Assembly: GCA_904063045.1 (NCBI GenBank)
Contig: CAJFCJ010000031.1
Coordinates: 248,001-312,000 of the forward strand
DNA length: 64,000 bases
Source: Dimorphilus gyrociliatus
Taxonomy: Eukaryota; Animalia; Annelida
Reading direction: 5' to 3'
Shown here: positions 5,986-56,570 of the stretch, piece after piece
How positions within the stretch are numbered: the first letter of the stretch is position 1
Layout: every line of letters starts with the position of its first letter
Translations under genes and position numbers: made by a program
The notes under the pieces: model-generated
What the model was told of the DNA's origin: nothing
The model's database searches: none
The model's input: the letters and a program-made list of their open reading frames with translations, nothing else

Positions 5986-7480
5986 TTAGACAAGAATTGG
6001 TTTAGCTTGAGCAATACTGTTGCACCATACGTAAGTGCGATTGCCGACCATAAAAGTTGCGTCGTAATCAAACCCATTAATGTAGTCTCCGTTGATTCCA
6101 TTGAGCTTAATCTCAGTATTTTCAGATTGGAAATACATTGGAGGTAGAACGCTAAATATTTCATTGATACGTTTTGTTGTATATTGGTTGCAATTTTCTA
6201 ATATGATATCGAAAATAGGTATCTTTTTAGCAAAGACAACGTCAAAATTTAATCTTTGAAAGAATGGCTGATTTTGCAAACTGTAAATATCGTGAAGCCT
6301 TCGCCTGCTATCTTTTTCTAACAGATTTTTAACAATATGTTTAGCTTCATTAGAATAATTTCCGTAAAACGGTAATTCGTATGTACTTTGTGAACACATT
6401 TTGGCCATTTCAAAATGATCTTTTCCAGGTTTCACTGGAAAATGACCGGCCAATAGAGAATACATAAGAATACCTAATGACCACCAATCAGCTGAATGCG
6501 TATAAGTTTGCATAGCTAATACCTCGGGTGCTATGTATTGTAACGTTCCACAAATTGTTCTTGTTCTTTCTCCAATTGACAAGCATTTAGATAGACCAAA
6601 ATCAGTAATAGAGATGTGGCCTAACTCATCCAGTAAAATATTCTCCATCTGTAATCAATATAATATTATTTACATAAGCGAAAAAAGGTCATAGTCTGTT
6701 TACCTTCAAATCTCGATAAATAATACCATTTTTGTGTAGGAAATCTGCAAGTTATTTAGTAAAGTTAAATAACTAAGTGAAAAATTGAGCCTAAATAGAA
6801 AGATAAAAAAAAACCAACCAAGTCCTAGAGCTATTTCGGCTATATAAACTCTTGTTAGATTCTCGCTAAAACGATCACTCTGTTTCCATAAAGCAAAAAG
6901 ATCACCATTAGGCTTATATTCCATAACTAAAAGAAAAACAACAATTATATTAGTAAATTTTAGTATATCTAGAATAAAAAAAGACCTACGAATGTTTAAG
7001 TTGTCCATGTCTTGGAAAAAAGAAAAAGCTTTAACAATAAATGGATGTTTACTAAAGGAACTTTGAATTGATGCCTCATCTTTAACCCTCTTTTTAGCTC
7101 CCAACTCGCTTATTGTCGATTTTTGCATTACTTTTAAAACTAATACTTTGTTATCAGTCTTTCTGTGAACTTTGAAAACATTTCCATAGGCTCCCTTGGC
7201 TATAATAGTTTCAATAACAAAGTCTCTCAGAACGTCATATGCACCTGAACAGTATTCAGGTAAAAAGTCTGATTCCTTATTCTTAGGGTTTGGAGATGAT
7301 GGGGATTTTAAATTTTCTAACGATTGAGCTCTCTTTCGTTTACTAAACTTGGACGATGTTGGGAAATCCTGTTGTACAAAAACATAGCGAAGTTAGGGTT
7401 CTGCACGAAAAATATACTTAACTAACCTGATCAGGTAGAGATGCAAAGTTTTTGTGGAGTTTTGGTTGAGTGTTCCCCAT
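5986..7480 (-). CDS. RSKR: Ribosomal protein S6 kinase-related protein (SGK494/RSKR-like AGC kinase), 5 exons
   Basis: Spliced: MGNTQPKL...FLPEY...[13 protein letters not shown]...HPFIV...IIYRDLK|[21 protein letters not shown]...[14 protein letters not shown]...ADWWSLG. RDLKMEN, CGTLQY and DH.EM motifs match the RSKR family. The MG start is a possible myristoylation site. Confidence 0.85.
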
Positions 7481-8476
7481 ATTTATTATTTTTATATAAT
7501 ATTATACGACATTGTTCATATATATATATCCATTTTCATAGAGATTCTTCTAGTAAACACATTTACGAGGTATAGGTAGCGCTAACTCCCAAAGTCTTAT
7601 TGAATCTCTTGAAAATTACCTATTTTACTTAAAAAACTACATTCTAAAATACAAAAAATTTGTTTAGTAATAATTTTTTTACTAATATTTATGTTATGAA
7701 AATAATTTTTTTTTCAAAAAAGGTACTCATTGACAAGAAAAATTTCATTGATATTTTAGTTCAAGTTAATATACAGAGCACTCTAGCTAAAAATTATAAA
7801 TAAAAAAATTTTTTTTCCATTGAAAAGCAAGTTAATTTTAATTTCATAAAAGATAATTTACTTCAGTAATCTAGTGTGACCCTGGTACAAAAAGACGGCC
7901 GAACTATTTCTTGGGCTTTTAAAGTATTCTACATCGACCTATTCTTTTTCTCAACTGGTAAGTATTTTTATGTCGTATTTAAAAAGGGTGAATTAATATC
8001 CCTTCGATATAAACGGGGAATTTTTCCGATAAACGGCCGTCTTGGAAGGAAACTGTTTGAAAGTAAAAGAAGCGCCAAAATATAGAAGCAATTCATTGAT
8101 ACGAATTATCTACATTTTAGCAAACTTGAGTTTTTGTTACAAAATTCGTTTGATTAGATATTTAGATAAGTATGTGTTTATTGGTAGAGCATATATTTGT
8201 TTAAGGAACATTTCATAAAATAATAAAAATTTTTAATGAGCGATAAAGCAGTTATAAGGCATAAATTAGAGAGGTTCGCTGATGTAGTTTGCTGCAGCAT
8301 GGCTGCTTTGTTTCGGAGACAAGATCCATGTTTAAAATTCGTCTGCTATCCTACATATTATTGCAGACATATTTAACGATATTGTTCGCTTTTCTTTAAA
8401 TTAAAGCCGATCGGATTGCCATTTCGTCAAATTGACTTATCCTGGGGCACCGTAGAGGCGATCAGAAAGAGAAAAC

Positions 8477-49798: not shown

Positions 49799-50082
49799 TG
49801 ATGCAATTTTTGAGACTGAGAATAGGAAATTATTTTTTCGTGCGTAGAAACTGTTGCATAATGAACAAATTTAATGTCTTATATCAATCTATGTTATATA
49901 GTCTGTACATTGTTTGAATTTTTTTTTAAGCAAATGGTTTATGAACATTTATTATTAATGGAAGTGCTAACTTCTTATTATTTCTATATAAAATTGAGCA
50001 TTTTCTTGAGTTCAATAAAACACTCAATAAGATGTATTAAAGTATTGAGAGTATATTTTTACCACTTGTCGGACTTTCCAAC

Positions 50083-50599
50083 ATGGCGTTCACATCTTCT
50101 CTTTTGCCCTTGATCCTTATAGTGGTAGTTTCATCGCTACCAATTAGGAATAGTCAAAAGTCTATGTTTGACGAAGTTAAGGCTAAAGTGAAGGAAGAGA
50201 TGGCCAAGAGGAATGAAACTGTGGACGATCTCATCAGAAAGCTGTGTAAGAAACGAAATATGAAAAATTGCACTGGAGTAGACGATGGTAGCAATTCCGT
50301 TAGGATCAAAGCAACATTACGCCCTGGAAAATGTATAAAAATATGCGAAGATCTACCGAATATGTTAAAAAAAGCTTGCGAACAATCGCACGATAGACCA
50401 GTTTGCGGAAAAGTTGATGAAGTATTCGAAAACCTTGGTAACCGTCGAACAAAACATTATTAAATTTTTTAATTATTGATTTAAAACTCTTTTCTTTTTC
50501 CGAATAGAAGATATCGGCCCAGAAAAGGTTGCTGATGCTGTCTCCGAAGCGTGCTGCGAATACAAGTGCTCCCTTGCACATCTTGCCTTCTTTTGCTGA
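50083..50599 (+). CDS. Atypical insulin/relaxin-superfamily peptide precursor, 148 aa, 2 exons (50083-50437, 50508-50599)
   Basis: Signal peptide of about 18 aa; B-chain-like ICEDLPNMLKKAC; 70-nt phase-1 GT-AG intron; exon 2 ends VSEACCEYKCSLAHLAFFC*, an exact A-chain CC-x3-C-x8-C motif. Confidence 0.75.
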
Positions 50600-50803
50600 T
50601 TGAACTGCAAAACTTTCTCTGCAAAATGCCAAAATGAAAATTGATATACGTCATTGTTTTTGATTGTATCATTTTTTCCTAATTATTTATTGTTCTATCG
50701 AAATGATTTACAAATGGTCTGCTTGTGTTTATTATTCTCTTACCGACTGTAAAATATACATAACTATTAAATACAGATATGCTGTATATTCCTATCAATA
50801 TAA

Positions 50804-50807
<4 letters not shown>

Positions 50808-50867
<60 letters not shown>

Positions 50868-50878
50868 TATATATATAT
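50808..50878. repeat. (TA)n microsatellite with one interruption
   Basis: About 70 bp TA run; it generates the spurious YIYI ORFs in the track. Confidence 0.95.
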
Positions 50879-51337
50879 GTACATATGCGTATATTGGCAT
50901 ATAATATTTATATTTATATACTGTATATGCAGAAATAGTCATAATAAAGCTACATTTTTCTAAGTATTAATCTAATTTGGCCAATCGAGAAAAGTAACGT
51001 ATCAGTAGATTTTTTCAACAGACACATTAAATGGACAACGACTTATTTTTCTAAAAGATTATCTTCGCATTTTCGAAAGTTTGCCACACAGCAAAATGCT
51101 CTTCTCATCTCTTTTACCAGTTTACATTTTGCAGAGTATGCCCTGAACCAAATTTGGCCGTCCTTTGACGGATGAAAAAAGGATCTCAATTTTCTATAAC
51201 ACTATCTTTTTTGGAAGTGTAACAAGCACAGCAAATATCATATGGGCATAATCGGCCTAAAATATATGATAATCTTTACAAAATTGATTTTATAGGTGAA
51301 TAATATTCCCTACTGGAATATCGTTCAGATAACTTCA

Positions 51338-53233
51338 ATGAATGCTCGATCTCTTGCTAAAAGGGAATTTGCAAGAGAGGAAAGTTCAAGTTCATCTGCA
51401 ACCGAAGATGAAGACGATGGAGATGTGTTGGGATTTAATAAGACTGTGGAGAGTTTACGTCAAAGTATTGAATATCTTTTAAAGGAAGATGACATGTTTT
51501 CAAGAGGATATTATCGAACATTAAAAAATGTGCAATCTCACACCAGATACCGACCAGGAGTAGTCATCGGCCAAGAACTAGTCAAAAAGCTCGTGACCTT
51601 CAAGATCGGTAATGTCCTAGTTAGAATACTGAGGAGCACTGAAAGTATTAATATCTTGGAGGAGGAAAATGCAATCGCTTTCAAAATTGTACGGGAGATT
51701 CTCTCGTGTATATGGAATTGTACGCATAAATCTCGACAAATGTGCGAGGATCTAATCGGCTCAACGGTGACTTTAACCTTATGCGAAAAGCTGAATGTTT
51801 TGATAAAAAATTTCACAGTTTGCCTCGTTCGGGAGAGCTCTACTCAGAATGTTGAAGATAGAACTCAAAAAGTGTATAAAACGCAATACCTTTGCAAAGC
51901 GTACCTCAGTATCCTCCATAACGTTGCAAGGCAATGTGCGGACATAGGAAGTTTTATCAAGATTGATTGTCTACGAAAGTTATCCACGTTGGACCTTCAT
52001 AAATTGATTAAAGCAAAAGTCTGCATATTGCTAGCGTACGTAACCACTGGTAACGATTGTAATTATTTAATAATTTCTTCGGACGTTATAGAATTTTTAT
52101 TGCAAATATTGGAGAGAGCTATTAAGATGGAGAACTTTTTCGATCAAGATACCCATTTCGAAGCCTACGAGATTGTAGCTGCTATCAACCGTTTAGCTAT
52201 AAATGATGTCAACAAAGAATTACTTGGAGAAAGTGGAGCTATCGAACTCTATTTGGCCATGCTAAGTGATGGTGGAGCTGAGAATCAACGAGTCGCCGCT
52301 GCCGGTTTATGGATTTTGGCTTTTAATAGACAAAATCGTGTCCGCATGAGATCAAATGATTTATGTGTGAAAATGTTAAGAAAATTGGCTGTTTCTGGCT
52401 GCGACGAAGGGATTCGAAGATCCGCCCGGGCCGCTGAGTTCGTCTTGCGTTTTGAGGCTCCTGAACCTATTCGTACTTTTAGTGAAAATGCTCCGCACGT
52501 TATGTTAAGTTATAATCATTCTACTCAACCAACTATGTTAAAACTATATAAGTTCTTGCAAAAGAAGGGCTTTAATGTTTGGATGGACGTGGATCACATG
52601 CGTGGATCGACATTGGACGCTATGGCTCTTGCCGTAGAAAGATCAGCAGTAATCATTATTGGCGTATGTAAACGATATCAAGATAGCGCTAGTTGTAGAA
52701 CTGAGGGCGATTATGCCTATCAACTTCGCAAAGCGATAATTCCAGTTAATCTCGAAAAGGGCTTTGTCCCTACTGGCTGGCTTGGATGCCTTTTGGGTAC
52801 GAAATTGGCTTACGACTTATGGGACGAAACTCGTCTCGAAGAACAAATGAACCGTGTTGTGTTCGATTTAGGGGAAAGAGGACGTTTGCCACCCCTCGAA
52901 CAAGCACCACCTGTCCGTATATCTACTATGCGTGAACCAAATCCGAATTCTACCGGATCTGCTATTGTTGCCGCCCATTTGGGTGTGCCTCGTGATGATT
53001 GTACTCGGGTAGCCGAGGAATGGACGACAGAGCAGACTAGAGCTTGGCTCGAACGTAATAATATTCCGGCTACTGGATTTTTGGAAAGTTTGGATGGTAA
53101 ATTATTGGTACAGCTTCGAAAAATGTATCAGGCTGCCCCTGAATGCTTTTATCGAGCTTTAAAAAGCGACCTAGACTACGATGTTGTGGCCGCTCTAAGA
53201 TTGGCAAACATGTTGGATAGCATAAATCTATAA
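51338..53233 (+). CDS. Armadillo-repeat, TIR (TIR_2-type) and C-terminal SAM-like protein, single coding exon (frame open from splice acceptor at 51296)
   Basis: ARM-like AINRLAINDVNKELLGESGAI...QRVAAAGLWILAF; TIR HVMLSYNH...GFNVWMDVDHMRGSTLDAMALAVERS...SASCRTEGDYA...IIPV...GWLG; SAM-like EEWTTEQTRAWL...LDGKLLVQL. Confidence 0.85.
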   Translation: MNARSLAKREFAREESSSSSATEDEDDGDVLGFNKTVESLRQSIEYLLKEDDMFSRGYYRTLKNVQSHTRYRPGVVIGQELVKKLVTFKIGNVLVRILRSTESINILEEENAIAFKIVREILSCIWNCTHKSRQMCEDLIGSTVTLTLCEKLNVLIKNFTVCLVRESSTQNVEDRTQKVYKTQYLCKAYLSILHNVARQCADIGSFIKIDCLRKLSTLDLHKLIKAKVCILLAYVTTGNDCNYLIISSDVIEFLLQILERAIKMENFFDQDTHFEAYEIVAAINRLAINDVNKELLGESGAIELYLAMLSDGGAENQRVAAAGLWILAFNRQNRVRMRSNDLCVKMLRKLAVSGCDEGIRRSARAAEFVLRFEAPEPIRTFSENAPHVMLSYNHSTQPTMLKLYKFLQKKGFNVWMDVDHMRGSTLDAMALAVERSAVIIIGVCKRYQDSASCRTEGDYAYQLRKAIIPVNLEKGFVPTGWLGCLLGTKLAYDLWDETRLEEQMNRVVFDLGERGRLPPLEQAPPVRISTMREPNPNSTGSAIVAAHLGVPRDDCTRVAEEWTTEQTRAWLERNNIPATGFLESLDGKLLVQLRKMYQAAPECFYRALKSDLDYDVVAALRLANMLDSINL

Positions 53234-53657
53234 GGTGTATTATTATTTTTTGTATTTGAATGTAAGTTAATTATAAAGTTAATGCTCAACCGTTCATTTG
53301 GAAGTTGTATTTCCTTTCTTTATGACTGGCGAGTTAAGAATTGCATATTTTTTGTGACTTACTTGTTTAAGGTAATCGTTACTGCTTTATGAAGCTTGTT
53401 TACTGATCTGTACTTTGTAAGTTTTGTAAAACAGAGAAAGCGATTAAAAAAAATGAAAATAATAAACTGAGATTTATCTCTGTAAGAAACGTAATTTGAA
53501 TTTTCTTTATTGTTCTTTTGAGTAGGCTAAAGTTTGAAGGAAAATACACATACGCAGATTGGCTATGCGGATTTTTTACTCAGTCAGACGCCGAGTTGTT
53601 TTTTACGCAGAACAAATTTTTTTAAATAAGTTTAATTTGGCCTTAACAGCACCCTCT

Positions 53658-53698
53658 TCTCTCTCTCTCTCTCTCTCTCGCTCTCTCTCCCGCTCTCT
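53658..53698. repeat. (CT)n microsatellite (GAGA-type) upstream of innexin A
   Basis: ctctctct... run with a few interruptions. Confidence 0.85.
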
Positions 53699-53932
53699 TT
53701 CTACCCACTCACTTAAAGTTGACCGACTCAACTTAAACAAACAACTGTATTGTGAACAATAGGAAGATTTCGTCTTCTTCTCTTTGTAGATATATGCAGG
53801 GGGTATAGAGGTAGAGGCGGAGAAAGAGTCTCGATTTAAGTTGTCTAATTAAGGCCTATTTGTATTATTACAATTACTTTTGATGATAATTAAAGCATTT
53901 TGGAGAGAACTTTTCAAACTGGAATAAGAATA

Positions 53933-55138
53933 ATGGATAAAGTCTTAGAAGTTGTTGAAGGTTTTCATCCAGACCTAAAGGATGACGATAGCGTCGATAG
54001 GTTGAATAGCCGATGGACTGTTATTATTCTTATGATATTTTGCGTTGTTGTAGCTGGTGAAACTTACGTTGGAACGCCCATCAAATGCTGGGCTCCTCAA
54101 CACTTTACCGACTCTCATGAGAAGTATATGAATAACTTTTGCTGGGTGAAAAACACCTATTATTATCCAATGCAAACTGACTTACCGTTGATAAGCGAAG
54201 GTGATGAGGGGAAACATTTTATACCATACTATCAATGGATACCGTTTATATTGTTAATTCAAGCTGTACTTTTCTATTTCCCGTCGGTTATATGGCGATC
54301 GTTTAATCAATCGGCTGGAATCGATGCTGATAACATTCTAAAAGCGGCTTTCGATCTTGAAAAGGTTATTGAACAGGATATTAGGGAAAATAGCCTCGGA
54401 GTTATAGTTCAACTCATGCATCGCTATTTAATAAGTCGGAGTAAGAATCGCAAAGTATTCTTTATATGCTCCCGACGTTATGGTTGTTATTTACTAGTGC
54501 TGTACCTTTTTTCAAAGCTTCTCTATTTAACAAACGTTACTATACAATTCCTATCATTGTCCTACATCCTTGGTACCAGCTATGGAATTTACGGAATTCG
54601 GGCAATATACGAATTCAGATCATTAACAACACCGTCAAATCCCACTTTTCCTAGGGTAACAATGTGCGACTTTAGGACTAGACGATTAGGTAATGTTCAC
54701 CGTTATACAGTTCAGTGTTGTCTTCCTATAAACATGTATAATGAAAAAGTCTACGTTTTCCTTTGGTTTTGGTTCCTTTTCGTTGCCTTATTAACGACTT
54801 TGAATCTTTTACTATGGATTGTTAGAAGTTTGTGGTACGGGGGTAAAGTAAATTACATATTTAATCATCTATCGAAGGACGACAGAGAAAGTCTAGAAAA
54901 TACTGGCAATAGTAAAAGATTACAGAAATTCGTTACTCGCTATTTAAGAAGCGACGGAGTGTTTCTTATTCGATTGATAAATCACAATATGAGTAAAAGA
55001 ACAACCGATGAGATAACTTCAATGCTATTTAATTTATGGACTCAAGAATTTAATGATACTATTATCAATGGCAATTCAATGTTTGGAGAAGATCAACCTG
55101 ATAATCAATTATTCGACGATGAACCCGTTAACTTGTAA
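53933..55138 (+). CDS. Innexin (gap-junction protein) A, single coding exon
   Basis: DDDSVDRLN, G.PI.CW.P..F, YYQW, FPRVTMCDF, CCLPINMYNEK, FLWFWF; four hydrophobic segments. First ATG at 53933 (the track starts at a TTG). Confidence 0.95.
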   Translation: MDKVLEVVEGFHPDLKDDDSVDRLNSRWTVIILMIFCVVVAGETYVGTPIKCWAPQHFTDSHEKYMNNFCWVKNTYYYPMQTDLPLISEGDEGKHFIPYYQWIPFILLIQAVLFYFPSVIWRSFNQSAGIDADNILKAAFDLEKVIEQDIRENSLGVIVQLMHRYLISRSKNRKVFFICSRRYGCYLLVLYLFSKLLYLTNVTIQFLSLSYILGTSYGIYGIRAIYEFRSLTTPSNPTFPRVTMCDFRTRRLGNVHRYTVQCCLPINMYNEKVYVFLWFWFLFVALLTTLNLLLWIVRSLWYGGKVNYIFNHLSKDDRESLENTGNSKRLQKFVTRYLRSDGVFLIRLINHNMSKRTTDEITSMLFNLWTQEFNDTIINGNSMFGEDQPDNQLFDDEPVNL

Positions 55139-56570
55139 ATAACAATTGCTGTTTAAATAATAAGAAGTACGTACCAGATACGAAGACTATAGAACATTTT
55201 AATATTTATAAATAGAACAAAAAGGAAAAAAAAAGAGAACGAGCTTAAAATACAATGATGAAACTATTTTTCTCTCAGATTTTAATTTAATTAGTAGACA
55301 CTTGAAGAAGTTTTTTCTGCAAGTGAAATTTAAGAACTTCCCAAAGACAAAAGGTTTAAGAGTGTATCGTCTATATTTATCTTTAAAATTATAACAAAAG
55401 ACAGAATGAAAAATTAAGAAATGAAAGAGGATAAAGTTGAGGATAGTATAAGAAAACGAGGAGGGAGGGGAAGAGGGAGGGTGAGAGTTAACTTATCTCT
55501 GCTGCACATATCTTGTAGGCGGCCTTCTTTATTTAAATATTAGTTTTAAATAAAAACTAACTTCCTATTGGAATATATATTTAGTAAGTGGGCGAGAGAG
55601 AAGAGAGAAAATGATATTACTATTGGCTAAAAGAAGAATAGATAGTCGTATATAGAGAGATAGTAAATGCGTATACTCTCAACTCTCGCTCACTCGAAGC
55701 GCATAATTTTATACATATTGTTCTGGAATCTTTTTTCGACCCTTATTTGGGTTGCACTTTTTGGTGCCTGTCGTCTGCTAACCCAAATTTTGAACTTCCC
55801 TTGCACTTTCTTTGTTCAGAACCCAAAAAAAAACTTTATCATACGAACAGCGCTGCGTAATATCTACTCTGGCCGTTTCATCATTTGACATTCAAGCGCC
55901 GACCTCTGCGATAGGTAAGTCTAAAACAAAAAAAAAAGTCTAATCGAACTTTTCTCTCCGCACTCTATTCTTAACGATCTTTATTTTCGGCACTACTCTT
56001 AGGCTCGTAGTAAAATCTATTATTCAGGTATTATAAAACGCCCTTATTTAACTGCTAAATCAAAAGCAAATTCCTTCTATTGGATAAAGTTCTACGATTA
56101 TTCATCGAACAGGTAAAACATTCTATAGGAAGAAATCGTGGTATAAGGAATGGAAGAGCATGTGTATTTTTTATTGAACTAATGGCGTCCGTGCAATTCT
56201 GATTTTAGTAATATTATTAATATAAACATATATATATATATATAAATTATATATCATTTATAGCTAAGTGCGATATAGAATGTTTTATTATCGACAATTT
56301 TTTTATAAACTTAAACTGATAAATAGAGAATGTTCGATTTAAATAAAATGTAAATAGTAATAATAATTCACTAGATATTGACAAGTGCACGTATCTCTAA
56401 AACTATTAGATAAGAACGCTGGCCTTTTTTTCTCTTTGCGCACGTGTTTATTTACATTAAAAAAAAATTTAAATGAACTTTGCATAAACTCTAAAGTCAA
56501 CGTTTCTTTCTTTTTTTAATATTATTTTAAATATTCTCATTGACAGTCTCGTTCAGCAAGGTCTAGGACT

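Follow-up and report, generated by a model that had tools for sequence, protein, structure and literature searches.

An intact ARM-TIR-SAM gene of the annelid Dimorphilus gyrociliatus encodes a candidate NAD+-cleaving protein and contains a facultative frame-breaking intron

In a 64,000-nt stretch of the genome of the annelid Dimorphilus gyrociliatus (GenBank assembly GCA_904063045.1, contig CAJFCJ010000031.1, positions 248,001 to 312,000 of the forward strand; hereafter the window, whose numbering is used throughout), an open reading frame (ORF) on the plus strand at 51338-53233 encodes a 631-amino-acid (aa) protein in which an armadillo-repeat (ARM) solenoid is followed by a TIR domain and a C-terminal SAM-fold domain. 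The gene at this locus is intact and transcribed, in a small animal with a compact genome. Judged by its sequence matches, the product belongs to the ARM-TIR-SAM subgroup of a widespread and already catalogued ARM-TIR family; as a type of protein it is not new. The reading that we favor, with somewhat more confidence than doubt, is that of a TIR domain that would cleave nicotinamide adenine dinucleotide (NAD+), would need clustering driven by the SAM domain and would be held back or regulated by the ARM solenoid. The sole unusual feature of the gene, and the new finding reported here, is a facultative 56-nt intron within the ARM-coding sequence, the removal of which breaks the reading frame.

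Results

Domain architecture of the predicted protein

The reading frame opens at 51296 (GTG) or 51338 (ATG) and continues to a stop codon ending at 53233 with no interruption in the list of ORFs, and a database protein of 631 aa (P0001) is 100% identical to the predicted product. An earlier reading made from the letters alone (the sequence-only reading) had proposed the order ARM-TIR-SAM, and this architecture was borne out by Pfam, by family profiles compared with the PDB, by AlphaFold and by Foldseek. The parts of the protein are located as follows.

51338-53233, plus strand: full-length coding sequence (CDS), including the stop codon, of the 631-aa ARM-TIR-SAM protein; it applies only when the 56-nt intron is retained (ORF list; identical P0001)
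51425-52453, plus strand: armadillo-repeat solenoid, residues ~30-372 (AlphaFold, Foldseek, family profile against the PDB, Pfam Arm)
52499-52849, plus strand: TIR domain (Pfam TIR_2), residues 388-504 (E-value 3.4e-16, model, profile matches)
52703-52705, plus strand: codon GAG of Glu456, the putative catalytic Glu of the motif S-A-S-C-R-T-E (motif and alignments)
52871-53017, plus strand: linker between TIR and SAM, residues ~512-560, predicted to be disordered (predicted local distance difference test score, pLDDT, below 50 at 521-552) and poorly conserved in the family alignment
53018-53230, plus strand: C-terminal SAM-fold domain, residues ~561-631 (profile against the PDB, two models, Foldseek)

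The TIR domain matched Pfam TIR_2 with an E-value of 3.4e-16 and 60.3 bits (cut-off 28), against an E-value of only 0.011 for the classical TIR model PF01582 on the same protein, and the TIR_2 class assigned earlier was right. In the AlphaFold model the domain adopts a beta-alpha fold, and a loop of low confidence at residues 418-423 is, judging by its position, the TIR BB loop. A TIR profile compared with the PDB gave Cat1 as the best sequence match (4.9e-5), followed by TIR-1 of Caenorhabditis elegans (8e-5) and, as a partial match, the TIR domain of human SARM1 (0.004); the RPS4 TIR was also found. The glutamate singled out in the sequence-only reading is present, and the profile alignments match it to the catalytic Glu of Cat1 (in 'CwdE') and to that of TIR-1 (in 'hkE'), which is the counterpart of E642 of human SARM1; this is the catalytic position on helix alpha-C. 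Together with C453, R454 and Y459, Glu456 was invariant in the 55 aligned proteins, which range from cnidarians to echinoderms, and all 28 invariant columns common to the aligned family are kept in the D. gyrociliatus protein. Four residues before the Glu, a Ser is found here and an Asn in corals, while SARM1, plant TIRs, AbTIR and Cat1 have a Trp. At this position the active TIRs of the fishes Clupea and Latimeria carry Ser or Asn and that of the oyster carries Tyr (10.64898/2026.04.20.719644, Table S4), so the Trp is not required and the Ser is no argument against catalysis. To call the protein a candidate NAD+ hydrolase is fair.

For two of the three domains single-sequence searches lacked power and family profiles were required; a phmmer search with the single sequence against the PDB gave nothing below an E-value of 0.1. 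For the ARM region, the single Pfam Arm repeat at residues 289-328 was borderline in the whole-protein scan (19.9 bits against a cut-off of 20.6) and passed when the N-terminal part was scanned alone (22.3 bits). The profile built from 55 homologues matched designed ARM proteins (6e-27), Vac8 (7e-18) and ODAD2/ARMC4 (1e-14) and also beta-catenin and APC. In the AlphaFold model (mean pLDDT 77 over the whole chain), residues ~28-371 form a continuous stacked-helix solenoid with pLDDT mostly between 80 and 90, to which Foldseek matched designed ARM proteins and APC-ARM.

For the C-terminal domain, a Pfam scan of the single sequence gave no SAM match, and in coral homologues SAM_1, SAM_2, SAM_3 and SAM_PNT matched at the aligned position, all below threshold. 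The top matches of a 22-sequence C-terminal profile in the PDB were, by contrast, SAM domains only, with liprin-beta (1.3e-8) and ETV6, the SMS1 SAM (2.8e-6, over 75 of the 85 positions) and the SARM1 SAM (2e-4) among them. Five helices are present in both AlphaFold models, the separate model of the domain having a pLDDT of 75, and the best 21 Foldseek matches to the latter were all SAM domains (Scm, PHC3, Ph, L3MBTL3 and others), with a TM-score by target of ~0.56-0.72 for 19 and a probability of ~0.8-0.99 for 20 of these 21, at weak E-values of 0.2-1.3. W570 is invariant and W562 nearly so across the 55 aligned proteins. Profile, model and structure search thus all identified a SAM fold, the outcome that the sequence-only reading had made a check of its proposal. 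That polymer-forming SAM domains (Scm, Ph/PHC3, Shank) are among the closest structures is only a hint that this SAM domain may self-associate.

The earlier statement that transmembrane segments and leucine-rich repeats (LRRs) are lacking also stood: the Pfam scan of the 631-aa protein gave no LRR match, and the hydrophobicity scan gave no transmembrane segment, the most hydrophobic 19-residue window containing charged residues and lying within the TIR domain. The protein is predicted to be cytosolic.

Membership in a widespread ARM-TIR family

The 55 homologues were collected at E-values of 1e-39 or better, and full-length matches to coral ARM-TIR proteins had E-values of 1e-59 to 1e-50. The closest proteins were P0002, with 69% identity over the full length and encoded on a genomic contig with innexin genes downstream, and P0003, with 74% identity over the C-terminal 59%. 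Next came ~50 coral proteins with 24-30% identity and the same ARM-TIR-SAM layout, and sea-urchin proteins with 36-38% identity to the TIR and SAM part over 98% of its length. In a protein search with this TIR and SAM region, paralogues from the same genome were not among the matches.

The sequence-only reading had presented the protein as an uncharacterised invertebrate immune or cell-death module. The family has not gone unnoticed: 'ARM-TIR' is already a named class in immune-gene surveys of the oyster and Aplysia (PMC4346834, PMC9334734) and the family forms a cluster in a 2026 preprint. There, Hurieva et al. called a TIR domain putatively catalytic when the C-alpha of its Glu lay within 3 A of that of ThsB E85 after TM-align, and their Table S2 contains a D. 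gyrociliatus entry, A0A7I8WD60_1, with a TIR domain at 385-511, Glu456 at a C-alpha distance of 0.87 A from ThsB E85 and an ARM-clan region at 83-372 (10.64898/2026.04.20.719644). Judged by coordinates and organism, not by sequence, this is very probably the same protein. Its cluster, defined at 40% identity, includes proteins of a sea anemone, a hydrozoan, an octopus, a slug, a bryozoan, a flatworm, a sea urchin, amphioxus, gar and green algae, and at least nine from D. gyrociliatus itself (10.64898/2026.04.20.719644, Table S2). A literature search on 'TIR-DC' together with armadillo and SAM found nothing.

Some further observations concern the family at large. The algal members of this TIR cluster include A0A2K3E7X5 of Chlamydomonas reinhardtii and A0A150H4E2 of Gonium pectorale, the latter with an ARM-clan region (10.64898/2026.04.20.719644); their presence beside animal proteins points either to a very old ancestry or to transfer between algae and animals. 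An M-G start was seen in 17 of 61 collected proteins, many of them coral ARM-TIR-SAM members beginning with M-G-x-x-x-S/T and often with Cys at position 3 (P0005, P0006, P0018, P0035, P0039, P0042, P0044 and P0050-P0052 are among the M-G starters). This start looks like an N-myristoylation or palmitoylation signal; it is missing from the window protein and from both close relatives of that protein, which suggests a different localisation. Finally, P0058, a 710-aa protein from a JGI metagenome, is a fusion of a cNMP sensor and a TIR, in which a cyclic-nucleotide-binding domain (E-value 9e-17) is joined to a TIR_2 domain sharing 43% identity with that of the window protein.

Evidence on NAD+ cleavage

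In the proposed mechanism, the TIR domain would cleave NAD+ at an active site dependent on Glu456 and on contacts between TIR domains, the one SAM domain would self-associate and thereby gather TIR domains, and the ARM solenoid would hold the TIR domain off, or sense a ligand or partner, as in SARM1; the output would be NAD+ depletion or a signal of the cyclic ADP-ribose (cADPR) type. Support for this mechanism extends as far as the folds, Glu456 and the activity of relatives, and the roles given to ARM and SAM are drawn by analogy with SARM1. RUN1 and RPP1 of plants are established NAD+ hydrolases (NADases).

The published data on NAD+ cleavage by relatives are mixed. In the E. coli screen of isolated TIR domains, those of the 639-aa oyster protein A0A8W8J0Z4 and of herring (Clupea, A0A6P8EVF3), from neighboring clusters, made cADPR, the coelacanth (Latimeria) TIR protein H2ZXV5 depleted NAD+, and the activity was Glu-dependent in all cases according to the preprint (10.64898/2026.04.20.719644). 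These three proteins are of a similar TIR type (H-[VI]-M-[IL]-S-Y, VWMD, C-x-x-E, W-L-G), although they fall in other 40%-identity clusters; they are likened to the TIR domain studied here by these motifs. The cluster that holds A0A7I8WD60_1 has no active member so far (0/4): the isolated TIR domains from Chlamydomonas, Branchiostoma lanceolatum, Lepisosteus and Phallusia were not scored active (10.64898/2026.04.20.719644, Table S4). This result counts against NAD+ cleavage by our candidate, as does the possibility that a large share of the mRNA cannot give rise to the 631-aa product (see below); against ARM control in particular, no specific similarity of the ARM region to the SARM1 ARM was detected by sequence, so that an autoinhibitory or sensory role of the solenoid is pure analogy. 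The screen, for its part, also failed to score the controls RUN1 and RPP1 as active (Table S4), and its authors stress that isolated TIR domains were used without their native oligomerisation (10.64898/2026.04.20.719644). A negative is therefore weak evidence, and the cluster negatives carry especially little weight because the SAM domain, the presumed oligomerisation module of this family, was cut off in the constructs. The earlier remark that no functional characterisation was known needs amending: screening results are by now available, with no active member in the same cluster and active TIR domains in neighboring ones.

The main alternative is a non-enzymatic adaptor, which we regard as possible but clearly the less probable of the two. 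Here the TIR domain would scaffold TIR-TIR assemblies in the manner of MyD88, ARM and SAM would serve as interaction modules, for which both are classical, and the Glu would have a structural or binding role. The inactivity of all four tested TIR domains from the same cluster is what one would expect of an adaptor, and TLR2, IL-1R9 and IL-1R10 show that the Glu can be kept without NADase activity (10.64898/2026.04.20.719644). It fits less well with an adaptor that Glu456 and the motif C-x-x-E-x-x-Y are absolutely conserved in all 55 aligned proteins, far beyond D. gyrociliatus, and that the nearest tested TIR clusters are active; the four negatives, moreover, come from a screen that gives false negatives for known plant NADase TIRs, and isolated TIR domains often need an oligomerisation of which the SAM domain would be the likely source here. 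On balance we retain the NAD+-cleaving TIR as the preferred explanation.

A facultative 56-nt intron in the ARM-coding sequence

Contigs assembled from three sequencing runs (X1, X2 and X3) were placed on 50000-55500; such contigs cannot reveal RNA ends or levels. The matches of X3 were 100% identical to the window, left the intergenic stretch 50920-51103 uncovered and lacked a 70-nt intron of a neighboring gene. Since intergenic DNA is uncovered and this intron is spliced, X3 behaves as RNA, that is, as a transcriptome of this species. Two features follow from its contigs.

51193-53404, plus strand: long transcript, minimum extent, with 5' untranslated region (UTR), CDS and 3' UTR (X3 contigs 51193-52035 and 52092-53404, 100% identity)
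52036-52091, plus strand: facultative intron (exitron) of 56 nt, GTACGT...TTATAG, within the ARM-coding sequence (joint 52035>52092, GT..AG, X3)

The retained form was represented by a read-through contig in X3 (record 12) and in X1 (record 3), that of X3 being at a similar word depth (1401 vs 1107). The run X2 stems from a relative, with contigs 90-99% alike, and showed the same 56-nt skip. X1 is an RNA run labelled 'coral metagenome' in which transcripts of this animal are present at 99% identity or more over 51487-53647; by this identity, the animal or a very close strain was present alongside the sampled coral or in its tank.

In the protein, the 56 nt correspond to residues 233-252, which align to a conserved L-A-Y...N-x-L-I stretch of the family, so the intron is best described as coding sequence whose removal by splicing is optional. 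As 56 is not a multiple of three, the spliced ORF from 51338 stops after 243 aa, and the long ORF that remains in the spliced form starts at the ATG at 52127 (Met264) and has 368 aa. The 631-aa protein can be made only from long transcripts that retain the intron. The sequence-only reading, which had described a single ORF at 51338-53233, was correct about the intact frame but overlooked the facultative intron at 52036-52091.

A comparable skip was seen in a species less closely related. The four contigs L001-L004, which come from four runs and encode P0003, lack ~85 nt in the same region with a shift of the frame and show only this skipped form. In L005, a contig of genomic DNA from a species with 85% identity to P0003, the corresponding 85 nt begin with GT and end with AG. 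The size of the 56-nt intron is ordinary for D. gyrociliatus, as its median intron measures 66 bp (10.1101/2020.05.07.078311).

A possible short isoform

Some contigs hint at a shorter mRNA that would encode M264-L631, which we regard as suggestive only. Two positions are concerned.

51923-51932, plus strand: zone of contig ends in three taxa and possible internal transcription start (X1, X2, L003, L004; suggestive only)
52127-52129, plus strand: ATG of Met264, in frame and in the strong context AAGATGG, possible start of a 368-aa isoform (context, conservation)

A contig of X1 begins at 51923, one of X2 ends at 51932, and L003 and L004 of the related species begin at the equivalents of ~51926 and ~51929 in an alignment made by eye. 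Word depth was much lower upstream than downstream of the intron in both X3 (mean 266 vs 2824) and X1 (3 vs 11-12). In an mRNA starting near 51923, the first long ORF would be Met264-Leu631 whether or not the intron is spliced. Met264 is kept at the aligned position in P0002 and P0003, whereas the annotated start at 51338 has a weak context and is preceded by two ATGs (51242 and 51266) in the 5' UTR of the long transcript. The 5' UTR also contains an acceptor-like sequence, TTTTATAG, that ends at 51295, just before the GTG opening the ORF.

These observations would be compatible with a built-in isoform switch, an idea that we put forward as speculative and rather doubtful. A weakly translated long mRNA would give the ARM-restrained 631-aa protein only when the intron is retained, an internal promoter would give an abundant mRNA for an ARM-truncated TIR-SAM form of 368 aa, and intron retention and promoter choice would together determine how much restrained protein is made relative to unrestrained (or decoy) protein, in a manner conserved among dinophilid annelids.

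A stronger version, which we consider improbable, makes the short isoform the main product: an internal promoter near 51923-52000 would yield an abundant mRNA carrying the intron in its 5' UTR, the 631-aa protein would be minor, and the protein translated from Met264 would comprise ~2.5 ARM repeats, TIR and SAM. It would account for the coinciding contig ends in three taxa, the depth gradients, the strong and conserved context of Met264 beside the weak annotated start, and the exclusively skipped form of L001-L004. The gradients, however, could also arise from 3' bias, and the contig ends fall under the limit on RNA ends and levels stated above. Conservation with P0002 includes the N-terminal 260 residues, which can also be aligned with coral proteins, so the long form is under selection, and an ARM-truncated form, which by analogy with SARM1 may be constitutively active, fits badly with high expression. 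By the same token, the SARM1 analogy itself needs care, because an abundant truncated form would be unexpected if the ARM solenoid were autoinhibitory.

Integrity of the gene and its neighborhood

That the gene is decaying, with the frame-breaking splice as a step to a pseudogene and the ORF as a relic, is a very remote prospect: although the spliced form is unable to encode the full-length protein and one relative was assembled only in the skipped form, the 1.9-kb ORF is uninterrupted both here and in the genomic contig of a relative, 23 of the 33 listed CDS differences from the relative in X2 lie at codon position 3, every family-invariant residue is kept and the intron-retaining form occurs in two runs. 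A pseudogene was accordingly rejected on the intact ORF, the third-position bias and the invariant residues. The indels listed against X2 downstream of the joint 52035>52092 preserve the frame, and the pattern as a whole indicates a reading frame under purifying selection.

The surroundings are gene-dense and AT-rich (~34-39% GC), with a PP2C-type exon and a small cysteine-rich gene upstream and an innexin gene downstream. The cysteine-rich gene is transcribed and spliced: its 70-nt GT..AG intron at 50437-50506 is removed in an X3 contig, and no retained form of it is listed in the contigs examined. The innexin gene lies 3' of the ARM-TIR-SAM gene at 53900-55138, and in the relative the orthologue is followed by two innexin genes (L005:4083-5261 and 7000-8220). 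As innexin genes adjoin the 3' side in both genomes, the local gene order is conserved; there is no evidence that this shared neighborhood reflects a functional link.

Discussion

Among animal TIR proteins other than TLRs, those of the ARM-TIR type rank with the most widespread, and none has a known role. The gene described here leaves the current understanding unchanged, to which it adds one well-described family member and a single regulatory oddity. Being small and culturable, with a compact genome and nine or more genes of this type (preprint Table S2), the annelid would be a convenient system, in which it could be possible to tell SARM1-like NAD+ consumers from makers of cADPR-type signals and to explain the negatives of the isolated same-cluster TIR domains in the 2026 screen. 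The facultative intron offers a concrete and testable way into the question of how an enzyme with such potential for harm might be controlled. As for the sequence-only reading, it was right on the architecture and the candidate chemistry and overstated the novelty and the link to SARM1.

Set against the ARM-TIR family (cluster representative A0A0B7AZE4 of Arion vulgaris), which is a class of coral immune-gene surveys as well, the D. gyrociliatus protein shares the ARM solenoid at the N-terminus, the TIR domain of the TIR_2 type that comes after it and the common motif H-V-M-x-S-Y ... V-W-M-D ... C-R-x-E-x-x-Y ... G-W-L-G, and the C-terminal SAM-like domain is shared with coral and sea-urchin members. 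With its 24-30% identity to the cnidarian members it represents a divergent dinophilid lineage, and it differs from many coral members in having no N-terminal M-G-x-x-x-S start. The gene is intron-poor, with one facultative frame-breaking intron.

In bacterial NADase TIR systems, activation by higher-order assembly is the rule. The likeness to Cat1 and to ThsB of Thoeris lies in the Pfam TIR_2 class and, for Cat1, in the C-x-x-E Glu aligned with Glu456. The differences are that the present gene is eukaryotic, joins the TIR domain to ARM and SAM partners in place of a CRISPR- or Thoeris-type sensor, and has Ser for the Trp of Cat1.

With SARM1, dSarm and TIR-1, the protein has in common the three module types ARM, SAM and TIR and a Glu at the E642 position, but its domains run ARM-TIR-SAM, with one SAM domain, rather than ARM-SAM-SAM-TIR with tandem SAM domains. 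SARM1 chains ranked first in a Foldseek search with the whole model, at TM-scores of only 0.18-0.29 and a root-mean-square deviation of ~25 A, so the overall arrangement is not shared. The SAM profile is nearer to the SAM domains of liprin, ETV6 and SMS1 than to that of SARM1, and the TIR profile is no nearer to SARM1 than to bacterial Cat1. The order, the single SAM domain and the profile scores set the protein apart from SARM1 orthologues, and a permuted descendant of SARM1 was rejected for lack of specific similarity in any of the three domains. Of the proposed 'domain-permuted SARM1 analogue', the analogue remains and the permuted SARM1 does not. What the two proteins may plausibly share is the logic, in which an ARM solenoid restrains TIR domains that SAM domains bring together.

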